The translations under genes were made by a program, and so were the position numbers. Positions 822 through 60,769 of a DNA stretch of 63,097 bases are shown here, piece by piece. The notes below the pieces were generated by a model. The model was given only the letters and a program-made list of their open reading frames with translations, did no database searches and had not been told where the DNA came from. The stretch's first letter is position 1; the number at the start of each line of letters is the position of its first letter. This stretch comes from Macrostomum lignano (Eukaryota), in contig NIVC01003022.1 in the NCBI GenBank assembly GCA_002269645.1, positions 1 through 63,097 on the forward strand, in the 5' to 3' direction.

Positions 822-3800
822 ATGGTTGTCAGCTACGCGTCAAAGATCTACACGAAAGATCGACTGTTCTTCCTGAAGCTGCTATTCCGATGGACTGGCA
901 GCGTATGGGAGATGCTCTGGGTCGACTACATTTTCTTTGTTACGGCCTACGTCATTTTGGCTGTGATTTATCACCAGGCCTTGGCTAATCACGAACATCG
1001 GATGATCACATTCGAGGCTGTAGTGCGCTGGCTGAGCAAAATTCGCACCTCTGTGCCGCTCTCATTTATGCTGGGCTTCTTCGTGTCGACCGTGTTTAGT
1101 CGGTAAGTAAGAAAACGCAGTTACTGGTATAAGCCAAGCAGTTCTATTTTTAACTATTGCATCATCCAATATACTAAAAATGAAATGCTTGGTTGCTTGC
1201 TTGTAATTGATTTTCTCCCGAACGGCTCAACCGATTTTCTTCAAACTTTTTTTACTAAAACTCTTGCTCCTCTGAGCCTCCACTGCTTCCTCTGCGCTCC
1301 ACTGTTTCCTTTTGGTGCTCCAGCCTCCACTGCTTCCTTTCGGTGCTCCAACTGCTTCATCAATCATCTCAGCCTTCCTCATTGCTTTCTCAGCGCCCAT
1401 TACCTCTTTGACACTCCAACTGGTTTATCAGTGCTCAAGCTGCTTCCATTGTGCTTTAAGTTTAATACAGTTATCATTGCCTGTTTCGACCCAGCTGCAT
1501 TTAATTCACAAAGCAACTTCACCCGCTACAACATGACCGCGCAGCTGGTGGAGCACGTGCATGGCCATCCCCTGGCTCAGCAGCATGTCGTTCTACACTC
1601 AGGCCCTAGTCGAGAGCACCCATCCGGTGAAAAGCGATATTGCAAGAAAAATTCGCATAACAATACTGCGCTATTCTAATCTATCCTGGATCCTGATGAT
1701 GGCCACAATATCGCAGCAAATCAAGGACCGGTTTGGTTTTAACCAGCCGCTCAAGGCCAAGAAGAGCAGTCAGGACCGTTCCGCCGGCACGACAGCTGCT
1801 GCGACAGCCGGGACCGGCAACGATTCCACTGACGGCAATAAGAATAGCAAGAAGCCCGAGTTTGAGCTCACCTGGCGCGAGAGGCTGGACCTCATAAATT
1901 TGGACGAGAAGGTGCGGAAACATTTTGGTCGATTGGTGACCGCTGAGGAAGTTGAAACTTTTGCCAGGTCGGCCGAGCTGTCGCAGAGCACTGATCTCAC
2001 CTACAGTCCGGAGTACTGGCTGCCCTCGCCTGGGCTACCCGGCTCATTAAGCGGTCTAGGATGTTGGGTGAGCGACTGGGGATGGTTGAAACCTATTTCT
2101 GGGAATGCATGCTTTTATTCAACAGTCATCTTGAGCTTTGCAGGGTTTCTGTTGTGACTTTTTTAGAGTTTAGGGTTCGTTGGATTTTGGGGGTTGTTGG
2201 AGTTTTGGGGTTATTGGATTTTGGGTATTGGGGATTGTTTGAGTTTAGGGGTTGTTGGATTTTGGGGGTTTGTTGAATTTGGGGGGTTTGTTGGATTTTG
2301 GGGGTTTTTGGAGTTTAGGGGGGTGTTGGAGTTTGGGGTTTGTTGGATTTTGGGGGCTTTTGGAGTTTAGGGGTTGTTTGAGTTTAGGGGTTGTTTGAGT
2401 TTAGGGGTTGTTTGAGTTTAGGGGTTGTTGGAGTTTGGGGGTTGTTGGATTTTAAGGGGTTTGTTGTATTTCGAAGGTTCGTTGGAGTTTAGGGGTTGCT
2501 GGAGTTCGGAGTTTATTTGAGTTCTTATCCTTGTTGGGGCAATAAAACGCTCCCAATTATCATAATAAAATCATTTAAGCCATAAAAACGAAGCGCTCAA
2601 TTACTGATAGCTGATAAGGTTATTAGAATTTATTTACACAATTTATAATATTCAACCGGAGTGTCTGGAGGATACAGAGATAAAAGAGGGGTAGCATAAA
2701 GTAATATATTTCTCTTAAGACTCAACATACTCGTACTCATACTGAATTTTCTCTAAGCAAACACATTTTGCCTAAAGTACTTACAGGCATTTATATGGAG
2801 GCACAATGAATGAAAATATATACCTGCAAGACTACTCGTTCAAGTACTATTTATGGTACATGAATGTTCATTGCGAGTGCAACAAAATGTGCTTAGAACA
2901 ATTTCATTCTAATCTCTAAGTCTACTGAAATTTATGTGTAAAGGGCACATATTTGTTTCGAATTCGCTTATGAGGGCCAACCTTCAAGGCAACACGGTTG
3001 CTTGTCAGTTAAGAATCTTAAATCCAACCAATACGCAAAAAAACTTTTGAAGGCCTAATCGCTGAGGAGCGTGAGCTGCTGTTCTTAGTGGAGATGATCA
3101 ACAAGTTCAGAGGCGACCTGGGAACCGTGTGGTCCTACACCGAGTTCAATGTGCCGCTGGTGTACACCCAGGTTGCGGTGGCCGCTGTGTACCTGTTCCT
3201 GTTCTCCACCCTGCTGTCAACCCAGTTGATCCGACCGGAGATGGTGCGTCAGGTAACGATGGCCCCAGCTGCCGAGTCCATCAACGAGACCCAGTCTTCA
3301 GTGATTGACACCGTGCTGGGCGTTGAGCTGCTGGCGTACTTTCCCATTCTCGGCTCGCTTGAGTTCATTTTCTACCTGGGTGAGGTTTTTTCAAAGCAAT
3401 AGCTTGCGTCTTTTTGAAACAGTTTGAAAAAGTGGTACAATACGGGTCAACAAGTTCAATCAGGGATTGTGTTTAGGATCTAGAGAAGGGTCAGCAAACT
3501 TGGTTACTTCAGGGGTCAGATAAATAATCTAGCTCATGGCTACGGGTCAGATGAGGGGAAAGAAGAGGAAATAGAGGAGAGAGAAGAGGAAAGAGACGAA
3601 GAGAGGAGTAGAGAGGCGAGAGGGGAAGAGGTGAGAAGAGAGAAGAGGGTTGAGAATAAAAAAGGGGGGAGAGAAGAGAGAAGAGGGTGAGAAGATAGAA
3701 GAGGGTGAGAAGAGAGAAGAGAGAAGAGAGACGAGGGTTAGAAGAAAGAAGAGAGTTGAGAAGAGGGGAGAGAAGAGAGAATATGGGAGAGAGAAAAAAA

Positions 3801-6549: not shown

Positions 6550-9500
6550 TCAGCCAGGCATTTGGTAGGCTTCAAGCCAGAGCTCGCCGGACTTCTTCAA
6601 CGACCTGATGATGTCCGCTAGGGCGGTCGACAGCGGCTTCTCCACATAGGGGATGCCGTGCCTGGCGCACAGCTGCTTCACGTGCGGCTGCACCAGCGGG
6701 TAAGAGTGGCGCGGCATGGTGGGGAACAGGCTGCTCGGCGCGGTGGGGGGTCGAAAGTGAGCACAACTATACTGTTGAATGTCTGAGCCAAAATATGAAA
6801 CAATATTGACCCTGTGAGTTATGATCTGGGAGGCTGGCTCAGCAACTGACATTCTGGGAGGCTGGCCCAGCAGCTGAGGATCTGGGAGGCTGGCCCAGCA
6901 GCTGAGGATCTGGGAGGCTGGCCCAGCAGCTGAGGATCTGGGAGGCTGGCCCAGCAGCTGAGGATCTGGGAGGCTGGCCCAGCAGCTGAGGATCTGGGAG
7001 GCTGGCCCAGCAACTGAGGATCTGGGAGGCTGGCTCAGCAACTGACATTCTGGGAGGCTGGCCCAGCAGCTGAGGATCTGGGAGGCTGGCCCAGCAGCTG
7101 AGGATCTGGGAGGCTGGCCCAGCAGCTGAGGATCTGGGAGGCTGGCCCAGCAACTGAGGATCTGGGAGGCTGCCCCAGCAGCTGAGGATCTGGGAGGCTG
7201 GCCCAGCAACTGAGGATCTGGGAGGCTGGCCCAGCAACTGAGGATCTGGGAGGCTGGCCCAGCAACTGAGGATCTGGGAGGCTGGCCCAGCAACTGAGGA
7301 TCTGGGAGGCTGGCCCAGCAACTGAGGATCTGGGAGGCTGGCCCAGCAACTGAGGATCTGGGAGGCTGGCTCAGCAACTGAGGATCTGTGGAGGTGGCGG
7401 GCGGTCAAGCCCGAGCATCTGGGAGGCTTCAATAAGTAACCCGGACCAACGCGCACTAACAAGACAACGTTAAGTGGAGAAACCAGATGTAAGAACCCGG
7501 TTGCAGCAACTCACTGGTGCTCAATCTGGTAGTTAAGATGGCCGGTGAACCAGTCGTTAAATTGAAGAGTTTAAGAGTGGTGATCAGTCACTCAAAAACT
7601 CCCACTTCTAGACACGGGGGAACAAGTGCCTAGGTATTTATCAGTTCAAATAACTTACTTCAGCGGGTCCTCTTGGGGTCGGCAGCCGGTGGAGTTCTGT
7701 GGCGCGTCGGGATAGCAAGCTTGCTGAGCGGTTACGGCGACCGGTTCCGGTGAACCACTGTTTTTCTTTGGTGTCCTTAACTTTATCTGTGGGTCGACCA
7801 AACGAGAGCGAATCAGAACTTCTTAACGGTCCTCGAGCTCGGAATTCACAATAGAACGTGCGCCCTAATGAACAATTGAATTCTCTAATTTTCTGTGATA
7901 GGTCCTCCTGAAGGGCGGCTTCTTCGTTACGTCCGAAACGTAACGGATAACTCAATTAAATCAATAAATCCTCTAGGAATATCCTAGGAAACAAGGAGGC
8001 CTTTCTCAAATGTATCGACAATGAACTGCTCTCGTATACTCAATCAATCACTTTATTAGCGCTATTAACAATTAACTAAATCGGGTAAACGCTTACCAAT
8101 TGGACAGGGATGGTCCCTCAGAGATTGGTCTTCTTATTTCTTCGGTGTCTTCTTAGAGACCGCTCCGAGTCTGAATTTTGACTTGAATTTTCACTTATAT
8201 TTATAGCAAAATTTTGGAGAAAAACCGGTTTGGGATTGGGTATTTACTTAGGTCAAAAATGTTTGATTAAGCGGTCATGCATGTTTGAGCATTACCATAT
8301 ATGGAGTTAAACAAATACAGCTGTTGAAATCCGGTTCCTTGATCAAACAATGTAGGGTTCTAAATCATTCTGTTTGCGCGTGATTCCTAAAATAGATATG
8401 ACTCATTTTGAAAGAAATTGACTTCCTTAGAATATTACTTTAAGTAGAGCATTACGGTATGGTCTAATAACTCTCTACAATATCTCCCCTTTTCACGAAA
8501 AATTCGTCCCGAATTTTAAAGTTAAAGCGGTGAAGTGGGGTTTTATCTTCTAATAAACATGAAAATGTATTTAAGGATTAGAAATTTTGAACCAGTAGTA
8601 GTATAGTAGATGGATAGGTAGATAGGTAGGTCACATTGTTATTGTGTTGCTTGGCAGGATGCATTGTTATTGTTAATAGGAAAGCGTATTATTCAGTATA
8701 TCGTTTACTTTGGTTGTCATTATATTGTCTTGGATTGCCACGTGATCGGCAGTCTCTGGCGTAATGACCAATTCTTCCACAGGTGTAACAAGTGGGTGGC
8801 GGAGCGTATCTCTGTCGCTGTGGCATGATTGCAGAAGTTTGGTACTGCTGCATGAGTTTGCTCAATTGTTCTCCCAATTGTGTCGTATCACTACTACGAG
8901 AAGTCAGGAGTGGGGCACTTGCTTCCCATTGCATGCCGCAACGAATTAATTGTTCCTCTGTCTCAATGGTTTCTCTTAACAACCTGTCTCGCAGCGAAGG
9001 TTGAGCATTATTAATGACATGGAGGATTAGGCTTTGTTCTTGGTCAGCAAGGCGTTGTCTTTCTCGTGCAGCTAGTTCTGCTGGTCCGATAGGCTGAGCT
9101 CCTGGGTTCGGTGGTGGTGGCTGGTGCAACGCTTTAATAATTTTGCGGACGTCATCGACGAAAGTAAGGAAGGATTCCGTCGGACTCATTTTTCGATTAT
9201 GAAGTTTGTGTAGAAGCACAGATCGATTGGTTCCACATCTGGCGAATTGTGCTCTCAGTTGTGTAACTAAAGTATGATAGTCTTGCTGTGCGGCGGCATT
9301 TAGTTTGCCATAAATTTCTCGAGCAGTACCTTCTAACAGTGGAGGAAGAAGAAGTGCCTTTTCTGGATTTTGTAGTCCGTATTCGCGAGTTACAAGGTCG
9401 AAGTGTTCAATGAAGGTGTTAAAATCTTTATCCATGGTATACATTCCAACAGTTTCCTTGACATCGCGATGCACTGTAGGGTTTCTTCGAGCCATATTTT

Positions 9501-12500
9501 CAAATGGGAACGGCAAGAGGACCAGATCTGGATCAATTTCCAAAGGATTTTCCAGATTGGACTTTCAAAGTGGCGAACAAGTGTTGTGTGTGTGTGCAAG
9601 CTCTTATTTACTTAAAGGAAGAAAGGAAAATGGACACGGGGGCAAAAAAATTCTGTGTTGCCTTTACCAAAGAAAGAAATTGAGATAGGATATTCGCAAA
9701 TTTAACAAAAGTATAAAACGGTGCACGAAGAATCAAAGGGTCTCTATGCAAACAATGGCGGTTCGGTAAAAAGTTCAGAAAAATTTGCGCAAAGGACTTG
9801 TGTCAAAGTACTTTCAGCGATCTAGCCTGGTAGCGCTTGAGCCTGGGCGAGATCACCAGTTGAAGAGTTTAAGAGTGGTGATCAGTCACTCAAAAACTCC
9901 CACTTCTAGACACGGGGGAACAAGTGCCTAGGTATTTATCAGTTCAAATAACTTACTTCAGCGGGTCCTCTTGGGGTCGGCAGCCGGTGGAGTTCTGTGG
10001 CGCGTCGGGATAGCAAGCTTGCTGAGCGGTTACGGCGACCGGTTCCGGTGAACCACTGTTTTTCTTTGGTGTCCTTAACTTTATCTGTGGGTCGACCAAA
10101 CGAGAGCGAATCAGAACTTCTTAACGGTCCTCGAGCTCGGAATTCACAATAGAACGTGCGCCCTAATGAACAATTGAATTCTCTAATTTTCTGTGATAGG
10201 TCCTCCTGAAGGGCGGCTTCTTCGTTACGTCCGAAACGTAACGGATAACTCAATTAAATCAATAAATCCTCTAGGAATATCCTAGGAAACAAGGAGGCCT
10301 TTCTCAAATGTATCGACAATGAACTGCTCTCGTATACTCAATCAATCACTTTATTAGCGCTATTAACAATTAACTAAATCGGGTAAACGCTTACCAATTG
10401 GACAGGGATGGTCCCTCAGAGATTGGTCTTCTTATTTCTTCGGTGTCTTCTTAGAGACCGCTCCGAGTCTGAATTTTGACTTGAATTTTCACTTATATTT
10501 ATAGCAAAATTTTGGAGAAAAACCGGTTTGGGATTGGGTATTTACTTAGGTCAAAAATGTTTGATTAAGCGGTCATGCATGTTTGAGCATTACCATATAT
10601 GGAGTTAAACAAATACAGCTGTTGAAATCCGGTTCCTTGATCAAACAATGTAGGGTTCTAAATCATTCTGTTTGCGCGTGATTCCTAAAATAGATATGAC
10701 TCATTTTGAAAGAAATTGACTTCCTTAGAATATTACTTTAAGTAGAGCATTACGGTATGGTCTAATAACTCTCTACAAAATGAGCCGCCTTCGGCATTCA
10801 TGGTGGCCTTCAGCTGCATCGGCAGCCACTCGCGCCGTTGGTCGCGGTCGATGTCCATGGGAATGTGGCTCATCTGGGTGCAGGCCACGAACCAGTGCGA
10901 CTCCAGGTAGCTGCAGGAGTCCGTTTCATAATTATACAGGATATCTATTAGTACAGTATAATTATAATTACAGTAACCTATAGATAAAGCAAAGTGATGT
11001 CCATTTGGCGCCCCTGGTGTCTCTTTGGTGCCCCTAATCTCCATTTGGCGTCACTGGTGTCTTTTTGGCGCCACTCATGTCTGTTTGGTGCCCCTGATGT
11101 CTCTTTGGCGCGACTGATGTCCATTTGGCGCCACTCATGTCTTTTTGGTGCCTCTGATGTCTATTCGGCGTCACTGACGTCTGGTTGCGCCACTGATGTC
11201 TGTTTGGCGCCACTGATATCTGTTTGTTGCCCCCGATGTCTATTTGGCGCTCCTGATGTCTGTTTGCGCCACTGATGTCCATTTGGCGCCACTGATGTCT
11301 GTTTGGCGCCACTGATGTCTGTTTGGTGCCACTGATGTCTATTTAGCGCCACTGACGTCTGTTTGGTGCCACTGATGTCTATTTAGCGCCACTGACGTCT
11401 GTTTGGTGCCACTGATGTCTGTTTGGCGCCACTGATGTCTGTTTGGCGCCACTGATATCTGTTTGTTGCCCCCGATGTCTATTTGGCGCTCCTGATGTCT
11501 GTTTGCGCCACTGATGTCCATTTGGCGCCACTGATGTCTATTTGGCGCCACTGATGTCTGTTTGGTGCCACTGATGTCTATTTAGCGCCACTGATGTCTG
11601 ATTTGTGCCCCTGAAGTCTATTTGGCGCCACTGATGTCTGTTTGGCGCCACTGAAGTCTATTTGGCGCCACTGATGTCTATTTAGCGCCACTGATGTCTG
11701 TTTGGTGCCACTGATGTCTGTTTGGCGCCACTGATGTCTGTTTGGCGCCACTGATGTCTGTTTGGCGCCTATGGTGTCCATTTAGCGCCCCTGAAGTCTC
11801 TTTGGCGCCCCTGAAGTCTATTTGGCGCCACTGATGTTTATTTGGCGCCACTGATGTCTATTTAGCGCCACTGATGTCTATTTGGCGCTCCTGATGTCTG
11901 TTTGCGCCACTGATGTCCATTTGGCGCCACTGATGTCTATTTGGCGCCACTGATGTCTGTTTGGCGCCACTGATGTCTGTTTGGCGCCACTGATGTCTGT
12001 TTGGCGCCTATGGTGTCCATTTAGCGCCCCTGAAGTCTCTTTGGCGCCCCTAATCTCCATTTGGCGCCCCTGAAGTCTCTTTGGCGCCCCTGATCTCCAT
12101 TTGGCGCCCCTAATCTCCATTTGGCGCCCCTAATCTCCATTTGGCGCCCCTGAAGTCTCTTTGGCGCCCCTAATCTCCTTTTGGCGCCCCTGATGTCTAT
12201 TTGACTCACTTCGGTGCCTTTATTGTTCGACTTCCTTTAAAGACAATCTTTTAATTTCAGCCCTTTACGTTTATGGTGGCCCATCTAAAGCCTCACAACT
12301 GCCATAAACCGCAATAAGCACTCACCGCACAAGCATGTAGAATCCAAACGTGGCAAGCCAGGACGGAAAGAAATGATTAAAAACGTAGAAAAATTTCAAA
12401 AAGAACGACAGCGTCCAGACAAAATCGCGCCAGTCGCCTCGCTTGAAGATGAAGTAGATATTCTCGTAGTGAAAGTACAGCGGCAGCAGCATTGGCGGCC

Positions 12501-38016: not shown

Positions 38017-41000
38017 ATGCCGATTTTCGGTCCCCGCAAAAAGAAGGATAGCGCCAGGGACGCCTCCCAGATGGAGATCGGCCTGCCCACAGACGTCAAA
38101 AAGAACATTCACATAGAGATTGATCCCAGCACTGGGGAGTTCCGTGGCATCCCGGAGATGTGGCAGCGCTGGCTAGAGAATGAATTCGATGCAGACGCCA
38201 GACGCGAGAATCCGCAGCAGATTGTGAACGCGTTCAACTTGTTCAACGATAATGTTAATAAAATGGCTAAAGGCGACGTCAAGTACATGAACGTTGGCAG
38301 CGACGATAGCGGCTTGGCCACCGACTACAACGGCTCCAGGGAGGCGCTGAACGACACAGGGCGGGGACCCAGCCCGCCGCAGTCGCCGCCGCCGCCAGCT
38401 GCAGACAAGAAGCAGCAGCAGCAGCAACAGCAGACCGGGCAGGGCGATTCACCGGCGCCTGTCACAACGCACACACCGACCCCTGCCACTCGCCAGGTTG
38501 ACGAGACCGCCACCGCGGCGGCCTCCGCCGCTGCCATCTCGGCCGCCGCCGCCGCCAAAACCTCCGATTCCTCGTCAACAACCTCAGGCAATAAAACGCC
38601 GACAACGCCTTCGTCGAATCACGACGGCGCCGGCAAATCTGCCGCGCCTGCGGCGACGGCGACCGGCATTGATCACCATGGCAACGCTGCCGGGGCCGGT
38701 GGTGGAGCTGCCGGACCGGTGGCCACCCGGCGTAATCGAAAAAAGAAGATGACCGACGAGGAGTTCTACGGCGAATTGAAGTCTCTGCTGACATTCGGCG
38801 CCTACGAGGACAGCTACTCGCTGGAGAATAAGAAGCTGGGGTCCGGGTGAGTCAGCTGCATCTATTCAATTATCAACCCTGGTTCGATTCCCTGAAATCC
38901 CAAACCACAAAGAGTGTACACCCTGAGTGAGCGTGTCAGGTTAATGTTCTCATCCTAAGAGGTCGCAAGTTCGAGTTCGAGGACGTTTATAAAAAAAAAC
39001 ACAAAGTGCATTCTATAATTAGCAACATAAGCTCGTGTATGCATAAGTGACGCACAATAGGCTGTGTGGTGTGCCTGCTTCTGCTAAACGGAATGAATAA
39101 CACATTCACTGTATAGAAGTGTACAGTGAGCAATGGCCGCTATCTGTTGTTTCTCTTTCCATCTCTGCTCTGCGTACAATGCAATGTGAAAGTGAATACG
39201 GCAGCGCCTTGAAAATACTTAATTATCTATTTTCAAGTTCGTAGATTTTAGTATGTACAATGCGAGATATCGCCTCTCCTTCGGCTAAGCCCATCACTTG
39301 GATAGATTTTCAATCTAAATTTGTCAGCTAGCAGGTTGGCAGACTTGGCTAATGCATCTTATCTGTGTTGACGGTGCGCGCAGCCAGTCTAAAGCTTAGC
39401 TTTAGATCTATTGGGCCTTGTATAATTCCTTATTTAATCCATCTTTTTGCTCTGGCGAAATGGAAGGCCTATTGAAGTGTTTACTAAAATTTATAACTTC
39501 TCTTTAAGCTGCAAGCTCTTTCAGTTGTGTAAGTCTAAATATACAGATACCAAATTAGCTAATCCTGCTACCAAATCTGCCAACCCAGCTACCAAATCTG
39601 CCAATCCAGTCACCAAATCTGCCAATCCATCCACCAAATCTGCTAATCCAGCTACCAAATCTGCCAATCCAGTCACCAAATCTGCCAACCCAGCTACCAT
39701 ATCCGCTAATCCAGTCACCAAATCTGCCAATCCATCCACCAAATCTGCCAATCCATCCACCAAATCTACCAATCCAGTCACCAAATCTGCCAATCCATCC
39801 ACCAAATCTACCAATCCAGTCACCAAATATGCCAATCCATCCACCAAATCTACCAATCCAGTCACCAAATATGCCAATCCAGCCACCAAATCTGCCAACC
39901 CAGCTACCAAATCTGCCAATCCATCCACCAAATCTACCAATCCAGTCACCAAATATGCCAATCCATCCACCAAATCTACCAATCCAGTCACCAAATATGC
40001 CAATCCAGCCACCAAATCTGCCAACCCAGCTACCAAATCTGCTAATCCAGCCACCAAATCTGCTAATCCAGTCACCAAATCTGCTAATCCAGTCACTAAA
40101 TCTGCCAATCCACAAATCTGCCAATCCGCAAATCTGCCAATCCATAAATCTGCCAATCCACAAATCTGCCAATCCGCAAATCTGCCAATCCACAAATCTG
40201 CCAATCCGCAAATCTGCCAATCCATAAATCTGCCAATCCACAAATCAGCTAATCCAGCTACCAAATCCGCTAATCCAGCTACCAACTCCGCTAATCCAGC
40301 TACCAACTCCGCTAATCCAGCTACCAACTCCGCTAATCCAGCTACCAAATTCGCTAATCCAGCTACCAAATCCGCTAATCCAGCTACCAAATCCGCTCAT
40401 CCAGCTACCAACTCCGCTAATCCAGCTACCAACTCCGCTAATCCAGCTACCAACTCCGCTAATCCAGCTACCAAATTCGCTAATCCAGCTACCAAATCCG
40501 CTAATCCAGCTACCAACTCCGCTAATCCAGCTACCAACTCCGCTAATCCAGCTACCAACTCCGCTAATCCAGCTACCAACTCCGCTAATCCAGCTACCAA
40601 ATTCGCTAATCCAGCTACCAAATCTATTAAATCTTAGGCACCCAGCGCCCTTTATTCAGCAGATGTCGAAAGGGTTTAAATTTTCTTAAAACGTTGAAAA
40701 CGTCAGTAAGTAGGCAACACAGAAAGATGATTGAAATATTTGTGAATATTTCGGTGCTAAACAGAACACTGTTCATCATGTTTCAGCGGATGGCTTGCAG
40801 CTGTGCAATCGGATTGATAGTTAAACTACCTGGCCAAAAATTGAATGTACTTGATTTTGGTCGCTCTCTCCTCTTCTCTGCCACTGTACTGTGCATTTTG
40901 GCAGTGATAAGGAATCTTTTCAGATTTTAGTGTTTACTGGGCAGGCTTAAGTTGCCTTCCTGCAAATCGTCTGCATTGCATACGGCTGTGTATCTGCATA

Positions 41001-43325
41001 ACTTCTATCTATCAATGTATTTGTGTGTCATTTTGTACAAGGGTATAACCGGCTTTCATTTCCAGAATGCTTTCGGCTTTTCGCCTAGTTGAAATTGTTT
41101 TTCACACTGCTTCACTGGCATCTATCAGTTATTGTGCTGTCTTTACTTATATATTAGGTCTATCTAAGTATGGTTGCTTTTCGTTTCGGTATGAGTGTCT
41201 TGCTAAGTATTCGAATTGGGGTTCATTCAGGCTTGGGATTGGGGTTCATTCCTTCAGGCTTGGGGTTGGGGTTCATTCCTTCAGCCTTGGGGTTGGGGTT
41301 CATTCAGGCTTGGGATTGGGGTTCATTCCTTCAGGCTTGGGGTTGGGGTTCATTCCTTCAGGCTTGGGATTGGGGTTCATTCCTTCAGGCTTGGGATTGG
41401 GGTTCATTCCTTCAGGCTTGGGATTGGGGTTCATTCCTTCAGGCTTGGGATTGGGGTTCATTCCTTCAGGCTTGGGGTTGGGGTTCATTCCTTCAGCCTT
41501 GGGATTGGGGTTCATTCCTTCAGCCTTGGGATTGGGGTTCATTCAGGCTTGGGATTGGGGTTCATTCAGGCTTGGGATTGGGGTTCATTCAGGCTTGGGG
41601 TTGGGGTTCATTCCTTCAGGCTTGGGATTGGGGTTCATTCAGGCTTGGGATTGGGGTTCATTCAGGCTTGGGATTGGGGTTCATTCAGGCTTGGGGTTGG
41701 GGTTCATTCCTTCAGGCTTGGGATTGGGGTTCATTCATTCAGGCTTGAGGTTGGGGTTCATTAATTCAGGTTTTAGGGATTGGTGTTCATTCATTCAGGC
41801 TTGGAATTGGGGCTCATTAATTCAGGCTTGGGATTGGGCTTCATTCAGGCTTAGGATTGGGGTTCATTCATTTAGGCTTGGGGTTGGGGTTTATTCAGGA
41901 ATCAGGCCAGATAAGAGTTTATTCAGCTTCGTAGATAGTGATTCATTCAGGTATATTTATATTGGAGCTGTGGCATCGGGTTTCCTAAAAACAATGGCAA
42001 TATTATTATCCAACGCCGCTCCCTCCGCGCCAACCAAACAGGGCATCGGGCACAGTGAAGCTGGCCAGAGACCGCAAAACGCGCAAACTGGTGGCAATAA
42101 AATTCATGCAGCTGGCTAAGCAGCCAAAACGGGACATGATACTCACTGAGATTGCCGTCATGAAGAAGCTGCAGCACAAGAATATTGTCAACTACATCCA
42201 GTCCTATTGCGTTAATCAGCGTAGCGAGAGCGCCGAACTTCTAGTAGTCATGGAGTATCTTGACGGCGGCAGTCTGACTGACGTTGCCACGGAGACCATG
42301 ATGCAGGAGCCGATTATTGCCGGTGAGACATAAAAGCCATTTTACGCGTCTGCCTAACTTAAATAAGCAAATTCGTTCTCCTGGTTGGGCTACCAGTCAG
42401 AGAACCAGCTCGAGGAGATTGGGACTCTCCTGACCTTTGACCTCCCTTGACCTTTAACCTCCTCTTGACCTTTGACCTCCCTTAACCTTTAACCTCCCTT
42501 GACCTTTGACCTCCTGAGCTTTAACCTCCTATTGACCTTTGACCTCCCTTGATCCTCACACTAGAGAAGAATGAAAATCTTCAAAGCTCAAAGCTTCACA
42601 ATCTCGAGTCTTCACAAGCTCGAGTCTTCACAAGCTCGAGTTTTCACAATCTCGAGTCTTCACAAGCTCGAGTTTTCACAAGCTCGAGTTTTCATAAGCT
42701 CGAGTCTTCACAAGCTCGAGTCTTCACAAGCTCGAGTCTTCACAAGCTTGAGTCTTCACAAGCTCGAGTTTTCACAAGCTCGAGTCTTCACAATCTCGAG
42801 TCTTCACATGCTCGAGTTTTCACAAGCTCGAGTCTTCACAAGCTCAAAGCTTCATAATCTCAAAGCTTCACAATCTCGAGTCTTCACAAACTCGAAATTT
42901 TCATACCATCAAAATGATTTGAGCTTCAACGAGCTTGGGATAAATTCTTATCCAGCTAGTTTTGACCGCTTAACTCGCTTTGCGCCCGCTAAAATCCCCC
43001 CAGCCGTCACCCGCGAGTGCCTGGAGGCGCTGGAGTTTCTGCACGAGCACTACGTTATCCATCGCGACGTGAAGTCGGACAATGTCCTACTGGGGATGGA
43101 CGGCGAGGTCAAACTGACCGACTTCGGCTTCTGCGCCCAGCTGGGCGACCACAGCAGCACCAGGCAGACCATGGTTGGCACGCCCTACTGGATGGCGCCC
43201 GAGGTTGTCAACAGGACTGTCAGTTATAATAACAAGATTGACGTCTGGTCTCTCGGCATCATGGTCATCGAGATGGTTGACGGCGAGCCGCCCTACATGA
43301 ATGAGCAGCCTATCAAGGTTTGGCT

Positions 43326-43414
<89 letters not shown>

Positions 43415-43415
43415 G

Positions 43416-43496
<81 letters not shown>

Positions 43497-43599
43497 GCAT
43501 GCCTGGCTGTCTGTATGTCTGTCTGTCTGTCTGTCTGTCTTAGTGTCTTTGTCCGTGTCTGTCTGCCGTCTGTCTGTCTGTCTGTCCGTCTGTCCTAGG

Positions 43600-43651
<52 letters not shown>

Positions 43652-44095
43652 GTCTGTCTGCCTGTCTGCCTGTCTGTCTGTCTGTCTGTCTGTCTGTCTG
43701 CCTGTCTGTCTGTCTGTCTGTCTGTCTTAGTGTCTGTCTGTCTGTCTGTCTTAGTGTCTGTCTGTCTGTCTGTCTGTCTTAGTGTCTGTCTGTCTGTCTG
43801 TCTTAGTGTCTGTCTATCTGTCCGTCTCGCAGAAGGCAAGAAAGCTCGCATTTTCGCACTCCTGATTCCAGGCGATCTACCTGATTCAAACCAAGGGCAA
43901 GCCGGACTACAAAGACCCGGACAACATGTCGGCAGAAATGAAAGACTTCCTAGACAAGTGCCTGTCCGTTGACATTGCCAAGCGCCCCACCCCAACGGAG
44001 CTGCTGAGCCACCAGTTCCTGAAGAAGGCCTGCCCCTAGCCAAGCTCAAGGACTACATCCTGGCTGCCAGGAAGGTCACCGGTAAAACTTCTTGA
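38017..44095 (+). CDS. PAK: Group I p21-activated kinase (STE20 family)
   Basis: Exons 38017-38846, 42042-42322, 43004-43317 and 43872-44095 join in phase. PBD-like [33 protein letters not shown]|[61 protein letters not shown]. As assembled it stops at 44039; restoring one C at 44033-44036 gives the typical PAK tail [16 protein letters not shown] to the TGA at 44093-44095. Confidence 0.95.
39555..40625. repeat. 21-bp minisatellite in PAK intron 1
   Basis: Unit CCAGCTACCAA(A/C)TC(T/C)GCTAAT; the ATKSANP ORF is repeat-derived. Confidence 0.95.
41214..41895. repeat. 23/27-bp minisatellite in PAK intron 1
   Basis: Unit TTCAGGCTTGGG(A/G)TTGGGGTTCA(TTCC). Confidence 0.95.
42428..42552. repeat. 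TGACCTTTGACCT-type repeat in PAK intron 2
   Basis: At least four TGACCTTTGACCT plus T(G/A)ACCTTTAACCT variants. Confidence 0.85.
42590..42900. repeat. 16-bp repeat containing CTCGAG in PAK intron 2
   Basis: Unit CACAAGCTCGAGT(C/T)TT. Confidence 0.9.
43326..43825. repeat. (TCTG)n microsatellite in PAK intron 3
   Basis: Direct reading. Confidence 0.97.
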
Positions 44096-55500: not shown

Positions 55501-58500
55501 TTCCTGAGGCTCACCCACCATAATTGCCCTCCTTCCTGTTTATTCCTGAGATTCACCGCTACCCTCCTTCCTGCTTATTTCCGAGGCTCACTCACCATAA
55601 TTGCCCTCCTTCCTGTTTATTCCTGAGGCTCATCCACCATTGCCCTCCTTCCTGTTTATTCCTGAGGCTCACCCACCATAATTGCCCTCCTTCCTGTTTA
55701 TTCCTGAGGCTCACCCACCATAATTGCCCTCCTTCCTGTTTATTCCTGAGGCTCACCCACCATAATTGCCCTCCTTCCTGTTTATTCCTGAGGCTCACCC
55801 ACCATAATTGCCCTCCTTCCTGTTTATTCCTGAGGCTCACCCGCAATAACTGCCCTCTTTCCTATTTATTTCGGAGTCTTACCGCGGCCCTCCTTCCTGT
55901 AACCCTCCCCAAAACTCACCCTGTCTTGGCGAAGTTCGACCAGAACCGGATGACGTCCTCACTCAGCGTTCTCTCCAGGTCGCTGAAGGCGTAGAATTTC
56001 CGCTGGAACTCGGCATCGAACGGCATGCCGAAGATGTACTCCAGCTCGTAGCCGTGCATCGCTCCGGTCCAGGCGGGCAGCGGCAGCTGCTCGGTCCTGT
56101 GGTTGAAGGTGTACACCCACAGCTTGTGCACTCTGTCTCCCAGCTCTAGCAGCCGGTCAGTGTAATTATCGGCGAAGTCCATTGTCGGGCACTTGAAGCT
56201 TCGGTCGCTGGTCAGATCGTCGAATGCGTTGAGCACGTCCTCGCTGGTCCAGTGCTCGAAGCCGAACTGCTTCGAGGGCACCTGGTATTCGAAGGCCACG
56301 GAGTCCACCAGCCTGTCGTTGATGTTGTTGCTGAGGGTGAAGTACTGCGCGACCAGGTTGTAGGGGTCGTGCTCGAATGCCTGCGGCCGGGAGCCCGCTG
56401 GTGACCTCGGCTGACCCCAGTGGGCTGGCAGCGACCAGTTGTTGTCCTGCAGGAACAGCCTGGCGAGGGCGTACATGATCCAGAACACGCCTTCGTCCTT
56501 CATGACACCTGCGGGCGACGGCGGGGCTGGCTGTGTTAGTGGGAGCTTGAGGGCGAGTGCTCTGGTGGAGTCACTGATTAGAGTGACTGATTAGAGTGAC
56601 TGATTAGAGTGACTGATTAGAGTGACTGATTAGAGTGACTGATTAGAGTGACTGATTAGAGTGACTGATTAGAGTGACTGATTAGAGTGACTGATTAGAG
56701 TAATTGGATTGAATTTCATCTCAATAAAATCCTGTTTGCACTTTCCGAAACAGCCTTGTCCAGCCAGTTCGTCAAAAATCAGATTTTTTCACCATTCATT
56801 TGGATTCCCAATTTTCTTCCTTAATTCGTTGGTCCTCTTGTTAGCCCTAGAATGGCCCGTTGGTTCACCCGGGTTGGAGATGGAAATTGGTTAGAATTTT
56901 TACCTGACACAAGGACTGACTGGCGGATAGCGACAGGGTTCTGGGGGGGGGGGGGCGGGTTCGGCGACATTCGAACTGGGGTGCCTATTTTCGAAGGAGA
57001 AAAGGGCATTGAAGAAAGGAAGGCTCTTGTCCTGGTCTTTCCGTCTCCTTTTTGCCAATGGGGGGGGCGACACGGAATGCTAAATTTAGCTGGCCTTTAT
57101 TTGGCACCTGGTTAGTTTAGGTAGCTGGAATAGAAATTGTAACTTTCCATTCGGGTAACTTTCCATTCGGGTAACTTTCCATTCGGGTAACTTTCCATTC
57201 GGGTAACTTTCCTTTTGGGTAACTTTCCATTTGGGTAACTTTCTATTTTGGTAGCTTTCCATTTGGGTAACTTTCCTTTCGGGTAACTTTCCATTCGGGT
57301 AACTTTCCATTCGGGTAACTTTCCATTTGGGTAACTTTCCATTCGGGTAACTTTCCATTTGGGTAACTTTCCTTTCGGGTAACTTTCCTTTCGGGTAACT
57401 TTCCATTCGGGTAACTTTCCATTCGGGTAACTTTCCTTTCGGGTAACTTTCCTTTTGGGTAACTTTCCATTCAGGTAACTTTCCATTCGGGTAACTTTCC
57501 ATTTGGGTAACTTTCCATTCGGGTAACTTTCCTTTTGGGTAAATTTCCATTCGGGTAACTTTCCATTTGGGTAACTTTCCTTTCGGGTAACTTTCTGTTC
57601 GGGTAATTTTCCGTTCGGGTAATTTTCCGTTCGGGTAATTTTCCGTTCGGGTAATTTTCCATTCGGGTAACTTTCCATTTGGGTAACTTTCCATTCGGGT
57701 AACTTTCCTTTTGGGTAACTTTCCATTCGGGTAACTTTCCATTTGGGTAACTTTCCTTTCGGGTAACTTTCTATTCGGGTAACTTTCCATTTGGGTAACT
57801 TTCCTTTCGGGTAACTTTCCATTTGGGTAACTTTCCATTCGGGTAACTTTCCATTTGGGTAACTTTCCATTTGGGTAACTTTCCATTTGGGTAACTTTCC
57901 TTTCGGGTAACTTTCCATTCGGGTAATTTTCCGTTCGGGTAATTTTCCGTTCGGGTAATTTTCCGTTCGGGTAACTTTCCATTTGGGTAACTTTCCATTC
58001 GGGTAACTTTCCATTTGGGTAACTTTCCTTTCGGGTAACTTTCTATTCGGGTAACTTTCCATTTGGGTAACTTTCCTTTCGGGTAACTTTCCATTTGGGT
58101 AACTTTCCTTTCGGGTAACTTTCCATTCGGGTAACTTTCCATTTGGGTAACTTTCCATTCGGGTAACTTTCCATTCGGGTAATTTTCCGTTCGGGTAACT
58201 ATGGGTAATTTTCCGTTCGGGTAATTTTCCGTTCGGGTAATTTTCCGTTCGGGTAACTTTCCATTTGGGTAACTTTCCATTTGGGTAACTTTCCATTCGG
58301 GTAACTTTCCATTTGGGTAACTTTCCTTTCGGGTAACTTTCTATTCGGGTAACTTTCCTTTTGGGTAACTTTCCTTTCGGGTAACTTTCCATTCGGGTAA
58401 TTTTCCGTTCGGGTAACTATGGGTAATTTTCCGTTCGGGTAATTTTCCGTTCGGGTAATTTTCCGTTCGGGTAACTATGGGTAATTTTCCGTTCGGGTAA

Positions 58501-60696
58501 TTTTCCGTTCGGGTAATTTTCCGTTCGGGTAATTTTCCGTTCGGGTAATTTTCCATTCAGTCATGCACCCGATTCCCACGAGCTCAATGACCAAAGCAAA
58601 TTTACAAGCTCAACACTCACCAAGCAGCACGTCGGTCTTCTTGAAGTTGCCCATCTCGATGACAGTAGTGTGGTCGTACGGCAAGAAGTCGGTGCCAAAC
58701 ACCGGCCGAAATCGCAGGTCGAAGTACATGTAGGTCTCGTGCCCGCTGCTGTTCCTGTAGATGGCGTAGTTGTTTCGTCGCTGCTCCCTGTCTAACGAGG
58801 TCTGCCCGGCCGCCTCCTGGATGTTCTTCACGCTGACATGTCGAAGGCATTCAACAACGCGCGCCTTGTCTTTGTCGTTGTAGTAGCAGCCCACCGATTC
58901 AGCCAGACGCTTGGCGCGCAGCTCCCCCATGTAGCGGTTCTCGGCCGCCCACCAGGCCACCGCTGTGGCGCTCTGCATTATTGCCCGGCGGAAATAAGTC
59001 TGCGAGTACGGCGAGATCATGTGGAAATTCACCGACACGGCGCCGGCTGACTCGCCGAAAAGCGTCACTCGGTCCGGGTCGCCGCCGAATTTTCTGCGGG
59101 ATTTGTGCCGTTTGCTTGGCCACATTAATGTATAGAGTTGAGTGAGGTGGGGCAGGGAGTGAGGTGGGGCAGGGAGTGAGGTGGGGCAGGGAGTGAGGTG
59201 GGGCAGGGAGTGAGGTGGGGCAGGGAGTGAGTGGGGCAGGGAGTGAGGTGGGCAGGGAGTGAGGTGGGGCAGGGAGTGGGGTGGTGACAGGGAGTGAGGT
59301 GGGGCAGGGAGTGAGGTGGGACAGGGAGTGAGGTGGGGCAGGGAGTGAGGTGGGGCAGGGAGTGAGGTGGGGCAGGGAGTGAGGTGGGGCAGGGAGTGAG
59401 GTGGGCAGGGAGTGAGGTGGGGCAGGGAGTGAGGTGGGGCAGGGAGTGAGGTGGGGCAGGGAGTGAGGTGGGGCAGGGAGTGAGGTGGGGCAGGGAGTGA
59501 GGTGGGGCAGGGAGTGAGGTGGGCAGGGAGTGAGGTAGTGCAGGGGCAAGATGGTTAGTGTTGGAACTACTGGCGGAAGTGGTGGCAGGGGTAGCAGTAC
59601 AACAGACCCACCGTATGTTGGCGTTGACCCATTTCATGGCCATCAGCTGATCCGTGAGCCCCATGTTGCCGGGCGCCTCGCTGTCGTGCATCATCATGAA
59701 GCCAAGCGGGCCGGTGCGGTACTGCATGGACACCACCACCACCCCGCCCTTCGCGGCCAGTATGGCTCCGTCGTAGACTTCGAGTGAGGCCGAGCCGGTG
59801 CAGAAAGAGCCGCCGTATATCCAAACCATCACGGCTAGGGCTGCCCGGAGCTCTCAGCTGGTGTCCACACGTTCAAGTAGAGGCAGTCCTCGGACATCTC
59901 CGTGTTGTTCCACCACATTATTAGGGCCTTGTTCTGGGGGAATATGATGGGGAATTTCAGTGATGAAACTGGGGGTTCAAACGCTTTAGGAGGATGCAGT
60001 GGATCAAATGATGCAGGAGATGCAGGGGATGCAGTGGATGCTGGAGATGCAGTGGATGCTGGAGATGCAGTGGATGCTGGAGAAGCAGGGGATGCAGGAG
60101 ATGCAGGGGATGCAGGAGATGCAGGGGATGCAGGGGATGCAGTGGATGCAGAGGATGCAGGGGATGCAGTGGATGCTGGAGAAGCAGGGGATGCAGGAGT
60201 TGCTCACCGCCACCTCGTAGCCGCTGGGTACATGGGGTGATAATAGCAGGTCTTCGGCTTGTTGAAGGCCTTGAACGGCCGCTGCTGGCTGCCCAACGGT
60301 GCGTCCAGCGGCTCGGCGCGGCGAAACCGCAGCGGTCCGACAGGCGGCTTGGCGAACGGCACGCCCATGTAGTGCCAGACTGGGCGGGCAGCGGCTAGCT
60401 TCTTGTAGCCCAGCAGCACTGAGCCGTCGCCAAGGACCGTGCGTCGCGTCTCGGCGCCATTTGGTCCGGCAGCCTCGTCGCCGCCATCACCGCTGCCGAT
60501 GCCGCTGCCGCTTCTGGGCGTCGCTTCTGAGCACCATCGCTGAGCATTGTTGCGGAAGCAGAAGCAGCAGCAGCAGCGGCGGCAGCAGAAACAGTCCAGA
60601 CCCAAGACTTGAGTTCCTCGATGCTCGCCGAAGTATCGACGAATGCGACGATGAAAGAGCTGATGAAGCTGGTGACGTTGCGGAGATGGCGAGCAT
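49554..60696 (-). CDS. ace: Acetylcholinesterase-like cholinesterase with signal peptide and GPI-signal-like C-terminal exon
   Basis: Minus-strand exons 60696-~60208, 59933-59612, 59093-58621, 56508-55920, 54514-54312 and probably 49681-49554. Motifs: YMGVPFAKPPVGPLRF, MWWNNTEMSEDCLYLNVWTP, VMVWIYGGSF, FGESAG (catalytic Ser), GVMKDEG (Glu), WTGAMHGYE (His), FWSNFAKTG|NPN, QCQFW. Three single-base frameshifts (60516-60518, 60234-60237, 59838-59840) must be corrected. The last exon is the least certain part. Confidence 0.9.
49695..50045. repeat. ~35-bp minisatellite
   Basis: Unit GATAAACAAGGGGAATTTCTCGCAAGGATGCGTA. Confidence 0.92.
50855..51045. repeat. 41-bp tandem repeat (4-5 copies)
   Basis: Unit GGGGGTCATTTAGGATCTGGAGGGTTGACGGTCCTTCAAAA. 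Confidence 0.9.
51505..51720. repeat. (CTCTC)n pentamer array
   Basis: Direct reading. Confidence 0.95.
52221..52880. repeat. Compound (TG)n/GCCT microsatellite
   Basis: GTGTGTGCCT-type units; Cys/Val and His/Thr ORFs are artefacts. Confidence 0.96.
52995..53622. repeat. 21-bp minisatellite
   Basis: Unit AGAGCAGTGTGACTCCCCCGC grading from a related 20-bp variant. Confidence 0.95.
54155..54300. repeat. 22/24-bp repeat next to an AChE splice donor
   Basis: Unit GGGTGCACCATAGAGACAG(CT/TGTG). Confidence 0.9.
55040..55900. repeat. 42-bp minisatellite with an internal ~449-bp duplication
   Basis: Unit CCCTCCTTCCTGTTTATTCCTGAGGCTCACCCACCATAATTG; the variant order starting at 55075 recurs at 55524. 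Confidence 0.93.
56574..56700. repeat. 13-bp tandem repeat
   Basis: Unit GTGACTGATTAGA, about 9 copies. Confidence 0.95.
57137..58558. repeat. 15-bp minisatellite (~1.4 kb)
   Basis: Unit GGGTAA(C/T)TTTCC(A/T/G)TT(C/T); the 298-aa and 426-aa ORFs are repeat-derived. Confidence 0.97.
59137..59537. repeat. 17-bp G-rich minisatellite
   Basis: Unit GAGGTGGGGCAGGGAGT. Confidence 0.95.
60003..60197. repeat. 9/18-bp repeat in AChE intron 1
   Basis: GCAG(G/T)GGAT and GCTGGAGAT units. Confidence 0.9.
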
Positions 60697-60769
60697 TTTC
60701 TTGTTGCTGAGCTGCTGTCGATCATCTGCTGGGTCTGCGCGGAAAATGCAAGGGAGTGGGGTGGTTACA

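Follow-up and report, generated by a model that had tools for sequence, protein, structure and literature searches.

Animal front-end desaturases of the Delta5/Delta6 type (FADS-like) combine an N-terminal cytochrome b5 (Cyt-b5) domain, which carries a haem-binding HPGG motif, with an FA_desaturase domain that contains three histidine (His) boxes, HDYGH, HFLHH and QIEHH, the third being of the QxxHH form. Front-end enzymes act on the chain between its carboxyl end and a double bond already present (Delta4, Delta5, Delta6 or Delta8 activity). A block starting with FNDWF is invariant among the enzymes compared here. Vertebrate FADS genes have twelve coding exons. Our literature search returned no paper on front-end desaturases of Macrostomum or of flatworms, nor on the insertion described here, which is a 3,215-bp long terminal repeat (LTR) element lying within exon 5 of such a gene on contig NIVC01003022.1 of the Macrostomum lignano assembly Mlig_3_7 (GCA_002269645.1). 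The window is the whole of this contig, 63,097 nucleotides in length, from the inbred line DV1 of this free-living flatworm.

LTR retrotransposons account for ~21% of the M. lignano genome (PMC5730564), and Ty3/Mdg4, represented by the Mag, CsRN1 and Gmr1/Osvaldo clades, is the dominant LTR superfamily (PMC12801592). The closest structural counterpart of the element is the TR-GAG class of plants, whose members are shorter than 4 kb, keep the hallmarks of an LTR retrotransposon and carry a single open reading frame (ORF) that encodes GAG only (PMC4350172). M. lignano is a neopolyploid. Single-nucleotide polymorphism (SNP) divergence among the three paralogous subgenomes of the DV1 line is 1.9-2.4%, with a value of 1.1% in coding sequence, and heterozygosity within a subgenome is negligible (PMC10733133).

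The desaturase gene occupies the minus strand of the contig as six coding exons, unlike the vertebrate FADS genes. All of its introns are of the GT...AG type and no frameshift occurs across the six exons. The element, at 7563-10777 and in the same orientation as the gene, splits exon 5 into two halves:

14390..14551, minus strand: exon 1, with the ATG at 14551, the cytochrome b5 domain with HPGG, and donor GTAAGT
13409..13504, minus strand: exon 2, acceptor ...CATAG|, donor |GTAAGC
12863..13191, minus strand: exon 3, with His box 1 (HDYGH)
12326..12661, minus strand: exon 4, with His box 2 (HFLHH)
10910-7515, minus strand: exon 5, interrupted; acceptor ...CTGCAG|, donor |GTGAGT
10782..10910, minus strand: upstream half of exon 5 (YLESHWF...NAEGGS); the unrestored frame enters the LTR, where TAA 10735-10733 ends it
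7515..7558, minus strand: downstream half of exon 5, with His box 3 (QIEHH) and donor |GTGAGT
6550..6730, minus strand: exon 6, from (H)LFPTMPRH through the stop codon TGA

When the element and one copy of a flanking AAAT are removed, the six exons join into a 1,281-nt ORF of 426 codons. The restored junction reads ...GAA GGC GGC TCA TTT AAC GAC TGG... and continues through FNDWF to QIEHH, the H of which is split at the exon end. A reading made from the letters of this DNA alone (hereafter the sequence-only reading) had proposed that an LTR element interrupts this exon, that its excision restores EGGSFNDW, and that every other exon and splice site is intact; all of its coordinates hold to the base. 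As it also stated, the third His box lies beyond the insertion in the unrestored sequence, with boxes 1 and 2 on the other side.

The restored 426-aa protein contains a Cyt-b5 domain (PF00173, residues 5-77, E = 2.6e-18; HPGG at 14440, minus strand) and an FA_desaturase domain (PF00487, E = 4.5e-32), and HDYGH, HFLHH and QIEHH are all present. By its domains and His boxes the gene is classed as encoding a front-end (Delta5/Delta6-type, FADS-like) desaturase. Identity is 52-57% to mollusc, nemertean and echinoderm enzymes and 48-51% to vertebrate FADS2-like enzymes, and the M. lignano protein shares the invariant block that starts with FNDWF. The restored junction (...GGSF|NDWF...) falls among residues F352, N353, D354, W355 and F356, none of which varies in nine desaturases drawn from a flatworm, molluscs, a nemertean, a starfish, a coelacanth and a mammal. 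The interrupted copy differs from FADS-like enzymes in having its third His box cut off by the insertion.

The inserted sequence has the organization of an LTR retrotransposon, with the following parts in gene orientation:

10778-10781, no strand: target-site duplication, copy 1 (AAAT on the plus strand, ATTT in gene orientation)
9861..10777, minus strand: 5' LTR, 917 bp (TGTAGAG...CTCTTCA)
9842..9858, minus strand: primer-binding-site-like sequence TGGTGATCTCGCCCAGG, 2 nt past the 5' LTR
about 350 nt, minus strand: leader, from the primer-binding site to gag
8689..9495, minus strand: intact gag ORF, 268 aa (ATG 9495, TAA 8691-8689), with a CCHC zinc knuckle
about 190 nt, minus strand: non-coding stretch from gag to the polypurine tract
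8483..8494, minus strand: polypurine tract GAAAAGGGGAGA, separated by 3 nt from the 3' LTR
7563..8479, minus strand: 3' LTR, 917 bp, matching the 5' LTR at 100% identity
7559..7562, no strand: target-site duplication, copy 2 (AAAT)

The LTRs are direct repeats with TG...CA ends, identical at 917/917 positions, and the 4-bp AAAT abuts both outer ends of the element to the base. Each LTR contains TATAAATA at nt 275 (near 10503 in the 5' LTR) and AATAAA at nt 423 (10355-10350). The knuckle of the gag protein matches zf-CCHC (PF00098, E = 1.8e-7). That a perfect repeat of 917 bp agrees with a target-site duplication, primer-binding site, polypurine tract and gag ORF is far beyond chance. Protein similarity in the 1,381-bp internal region, which is too short to hold pol, is restricted to gag, and no trace of protease, reverse transcriptase (RT), RNase H, integrase or env was found there. 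Because pol is missing from this region, the element is classified from its sequence as a non-autonomous, gag-only LTR retrotransposon. No further copy of it, and no solo LTR, occurs within the window or within the sister contig described below.

Like plant TR-GAG elements, this one is shorter than 4 kb and combines a lone gag ORF with LTRs, a target-site duplication, a primer-binding site and a polypurine tract. It differs in its animal host and has no sequence relationship to them, so the resemblance is structural only; that an autonomous partner mobilizes it in trans is an assumption. Transfer RNA (tRNA) and Rfam scans of the window returned nothing, and hence no tRNA gene is available there to match the putative primer-binding site. 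The sequence around this site, adjoining the 5' LTR at 9815-9860, includes a short inverted repeat, GATCT...AGATC, that ends in ACCA on the plus strand and resembles a tRNA end; by eye it matched none of the tRNA 3' ends with which it was compared.

Direct evidence for integration comes from a second contig of the same assembly, NIVC01002677.1 (L001), which carries the empty site. It encodes PAA55994.1, a 426-aa protein 100% identical to the restored product, and its gene order follows that of the window for more than 20 kb, with a bestrophin gene downstream and, upstream, a pair of NPY-like genes in both; the two are collinear throughout this stretch. The exon 5 flanks from the window align to this contig up to 13557 and from 13554, and the overlap is a single AAAT at 13554-13557 (ATTT in gene orientation) exactly at the predicted junction, CAGTCGTT-AAAT-GAGCCG. 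Given one AAAT in the sister contig and two in the window, the interruption reflects a true integration with a 4-bp duplication, and mis-assembly is very unlikely. The search for an uninterrupted paralog that the sequence-only reading had proposed as a check was therefore successful.

The two copies differ at 8/1,281 coding positions, and all eight differences are synonymous (codons 27, 49, 74, 141, 308, 360, 376 and 425; synonymous divergence dS = 0.030, non-synonymous divergence dN = 0). Variants of the interrupted copy include AAG27, GCT49, CTG74 and GTG141. Given 275 synonymous and 1,003 non-synonymous sites, neutrality would yield eight synonymous changes out of eight with a probability of ~5e-6, which indicates that purifying selection has acted on both copies during most of the period since their divergence. 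The flanks, aligned outside repeats, differ by SNPs at 414/17,546 positions (2.36%). As this value falls in the range reported among subgenomes, and heterozygosity within a subgenome is negligible, the two contigs are best read as homeologs rather than alleles. The suggestion in the sequence-only reading that the insertion might be heterozygous is thus probably the wrong frame, since an intact copy ~2.4% divergent in its flanks fits a homeolog (PMC10733133), whereas its alternative of buffering by a duplicate gene is borne out by the identical protein and by two further groups of paralogs. These groups, at ~80% (P0002, P0003) and 72% identity (P0006), are each found on at least two contigs and have all His boxes. 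The cluster of the restored protein at 90% identity has four members only, one of which is PAA53791.1.

Non-coding sequence around the two copies differs in length as well as in SNPs. Introns 4 and 5 consist mostly of minisatellite (10995-12203 and 6823-7398; a 20-bp unit in ~60 copies and a 28-bp unit in ~20 copies), and in the window and the sister contig, respectively, intron 4 measures 1,415 and 1,074 bp and intron 5 measures 784 and 565 bp. An upstream 33-bp array of ~82 copies spans 20417-23140 in the window, compared with only ~790 bp in the sister contig.

The insertion is very young, and the gene around it is otherwise intact, without secondary decay. With 0/917 differences between the LTRs, the 95% upper bound on their divergence is 0.33%. 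Set against the divergence of the two copies, this bound puts the insertion in about the final 15% of the period following their separation. The recent origin proposed by the sequence-only reading thus agrees with the identical LTRs, the intact gene and the dN of zero relative to the sister copy, and the coding sequence points to selection on the interrupted copy until recently.

Taken together, the locus is most probably the result of a recent integration, in sense orientation, of a 3.2-kb TR-GAG-like element, probably of Ty3/Mdg4 ancestry, into exon 5 of one homeologous desaturase copy of DV1. Transcription from the gene promoter would enter the 5' LTR in sense orientation, where the frame would continue for 15 LTR-encoded codons and stop at TAA 10735-10733, to give a 366-aa product that lacks QIEHH and the C terminus. 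The transcript would probably end at the LTR poly(A) signal, AATAAA, at 10355-10350. As the third His box is needed for the di-iron centre, the interrupted copy would be null. Desaturation of polyunsaturated fatty acids (PUFAs) would continue through the intact homeolog or homeologs and the two other paralog groups, such that the loss would be buffered, and no phenotype would be expected given an identical homeolog and the paralogous desaturases. In culture the worms also receive long-chain PUFAs in quantity from their diatom diet.

The event may mark an early stage in the loss of duplicate genes that follows whole-genome duplication. As in homeolog fractionation by transposons generally, the subgenomes hold two or three near-identical copies, of which one appears to be disabled while another keeps an identical protein (PMC10733133). 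The M. lignano case differs in that it is seen at a very early stage, without secondary decay, and in a laboratory inbred line.

Existing gene models bear the marks of the insertion. At the interrupted locus, the GenBank coding sequence PAA53791.1 (BOX15_Mlig001381g2, 350 aa, labelled partial; 12322-14677, minus strand) comprises exons 1-4 only. It runs unspliced into intron 4 and ends at CGG TGA (TGA 12324-12322), with no mention of a transposon. In this transcript-based model exon 4 is not spliced to exon 5, whereas the GenBank model at the sister locus is complete. The truncation would fit defective expression of the interrupted copy without proving it. A second model, UniRef A0A1I8GMU3 (P0122, 518 aa), which we take to be a gene model of the older ML2 assembly, follows exactly the read-through from exon 5 into the LTR (10777-10739) and has two copies of the LTR-derived peptide, so that both LTRs and the junction are present in that assembly too. 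The insertion thus explains both the truncated PAA53791.1 and the LTR peptides in A0A1I8GMU3, and both entries merit a flag as a transposon-disrupted copy.

Several other accounts of the locus can be weighed against this evidence. A chimeric read or mis-join might have placed the element in the exon, since the assembly, a PacBio draft of a polyploid genome rich in repeats, is redundant (PMC5730564) and the window is full of minisatellites. Such an error, however, would not yield a perfect 4-bp duplication matched by a single copy at the same point in the sister contig, nor LTR ends that abut the duplication to the base around a coherent order of LTR, primer-binding site, gag, polypurine tract and LTR. 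The gene model from the other assembly, moreover, reads through the same junction and holds both LTRs. We consider an assembly artefact extremely unlikely. Greater weight can be given to an insertion that is polymorphic or heterozygous within one subgenome, perhaps new in DV1 culture, with an empty allele of the same copy co-existing. The zero divergence of the LTRs and the lack of secondary decay mean that the event could be only generations old, the sequenced DNA was a pool from several worms, M. lignano transcribes LTR retrotransposons (PMC12801592), and the older protein set holds several empty-site models (P0123, n = 2, and P0004). Nonetheless, this account is unlikely: heterozygosity within subgenomes is negligible in the highly inbred DV1 line (PMC10733133), the sole empty-site contig recovered is too divergent, at ~2.4%, to be the same copy, and P0004 carries GTA141, the variant of the other copy.

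The remaining accounts accept the insertion and dispute its effect. If the element were spliced out of the mRNA, the interrupted copy might still give a functional enzyme. The ab initio model P0122 does link cryptic LTR exons to exon 6, and skipping of the restored exon 5, which is 177 nt long, would keep the reading frame. Yet the element borders offer no GT...AG pair that would restore ...SF|ND... (...GGCTCATTT joined directly to AACGACTGG), the P0122 path and exon 5 skipping both delete the invariant third His box, and the transcript-based GenBank model has no join between exons 4 and 5 at this locus. Rescue by splicing is accordingly hardly credible. It is also conceivable that the copy was a silent pseudogene before the element arrived, in which case the insertion had no effect; polyploids tolerate duplicate loss. 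The absence of non-synonymous changes among the eight coding differences (P ~5e-6), along with an intact ORF and intact splice sites throughout, makes prior silencing very improbable.

A recent integration into one homeolog therefore remains the best explanation of the locus, although several points weigh against it or against parts of it. The ML2 and Mlig_3_7 assemblies presumably share raw PacBio reads and so would not be fully independent. Exact look-ups in public assemblies of the gag ORF and of the 103-aa ORF that spans the junction of the upstream exon 5 half with the LTR found neither on record. The 100% identity of the LTRs could be inflated in part by PacBio consensus polishing or by gene conversion between LTRs. 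The contig pair may be homeologs or may be copies of the extra large chromosome. The superfamily assignment draws on gag similarity of ~28-33% to chimeric polyprotein models. Finally, truncation at the poly(A) signal, the expression level, the loss of function and hence the knockout status of the interrupted copy are all inferred from sequence. The sequence-only reading spoke of a natural knockout allele, but DV1 is a laboratory line, and the insertion need not be of natural origin.

The affinities of the element are visible through its gag protein. A word-indexed protein search with gag gave no match, and its relatives came from a full HMMER search. The most similar are P0133 (58% identity) and P0134 (68% identity over a partial match), the latter a chimeric model that we assume to originate from M. 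lignano. Two M. lignano models, P0135 and P0136, are 30-33% identical (E = 1.7e-24 and 2.5e-18). P0136 contains aspartyl protease, RVT_1, RT_RNaseH, Integrase_H2C2 and rve domains, and P0135 contains aspartyl protease and Integrase_H2C2 only. More broadly, the gag regions of M. lignano Ty3/Mdg4 polyproteins (protease-RT-RNaseH-Integrase_H2C2-rve) are 28-33% identical to that of the element, and its 4-bp duplication and TG..CA ends fit this superfamily (PMC12801592). The gag relatives and the 4-bp duplication together tentatively suggest Ty3/Mdg4 ancestry. The superfamily is defined by RT phylogeny and by the domain order protease-RT-RNase H-integrase; the M. lignano Ty3/Mdg4 elements carry RT, whereas this element lacks it and so cannot be placed in a clade.

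We also considered membership in the published heat-induced LTR families of M. lignano, which are defined by an LTR heat-shock element that precedes the transcription start site and is built of three nGAAn units in alternation (PMC12801592). No canonical three-unit element occurs in the LTR, where neither GAAnnTTCnnGAA nor TTCnnGAAnnTTC is present and a single two-unit GAAAATTC lies at nt 288; membership was rejected for this reason.

P0133 corresponds to the ORF at 182-2365 of a transcript-like Logan contig (SRR31628437_325687, L003), in which gag is followed by a proline-rich linker, a transmembrane segment and a Cys-rich env-like region, all within one ORF. The env-like C-terminal region spans roughly 250 aa and matches no Pfam family even at E = 1. 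P0134 gives a sub-threshold match to PF24664, a viral fusion glycoprotein. The Logan contig was rejected as a member of the same family as the element, as nucleotide identity is ~65% and confined to the gag region. P0133 and P0134 may nevertheless represent an env-bearing lineage related to the gag-only element, and the fusion of its closest gag relative to an env-like ORF hints at an unusual autonomous or helper lineage.

Insertion of transposons into exons and loss of duplicates after genome doubling are both well known, and in this sense the insertion is an ordinary event. Two aspects are mildly new. One is a specific, datable homeolog knockout; the other is an animal element of gag-only, TR-GAG-like type whose ORF is intact and whose LTRs are identical. 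The LTRharvest screen of M. lignano accepted only target-site duplications of 5 bp or more (PMC5730564), and the later DARTS screen took the RT domain as its seed (PMC12801592), so that the published LTR screens could have missed an element with a 4-bp duplication and no RT. It is a candidate for a recently active non-autonomous family. One might go further and suppose that a TR-GAG-type family is active at present and was caught near the moment of transposition, possibly within the laboratory history of DV1, as it knocked out a homeolog; we regard this as possible but doubtful. If true, the first step of duplicate-gene loss would be directly observable in a neopolyploid. M. lignano is a model for regeneration and neopolyploidy, in which this locus would provide a clean and datable case of homeolog inactivation by a transposon. 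The eight diagnostic synonymous SNPs would permit copy-specific expression tests.

Other features of the window lie outside the desaturase gene. Bestrophin exons are found at 1561-2157 (plus strand) and an NPY-like (Hormone_3) gene at about 23-24 kb. A PAK-like kinase gene with P21-Rho-binding and protein kinase domains occupies 37999-38850 and 42571-43782 (plus strand), and a carboxylesterase-family gene lies at 55916-60725 (minus strand). Minisatellite arrays stud the whole contig. In addition, there are pure tetranucleotide arrays of (AATC) in ~361 copies at 24610-26055, (CCAA) in 48 copies at 26286-26477, (CTGA) in ~108 copies at 26791-27224 and (TCTG) in ~126 copies at 43326-43827, which cause strong local skews in composition.

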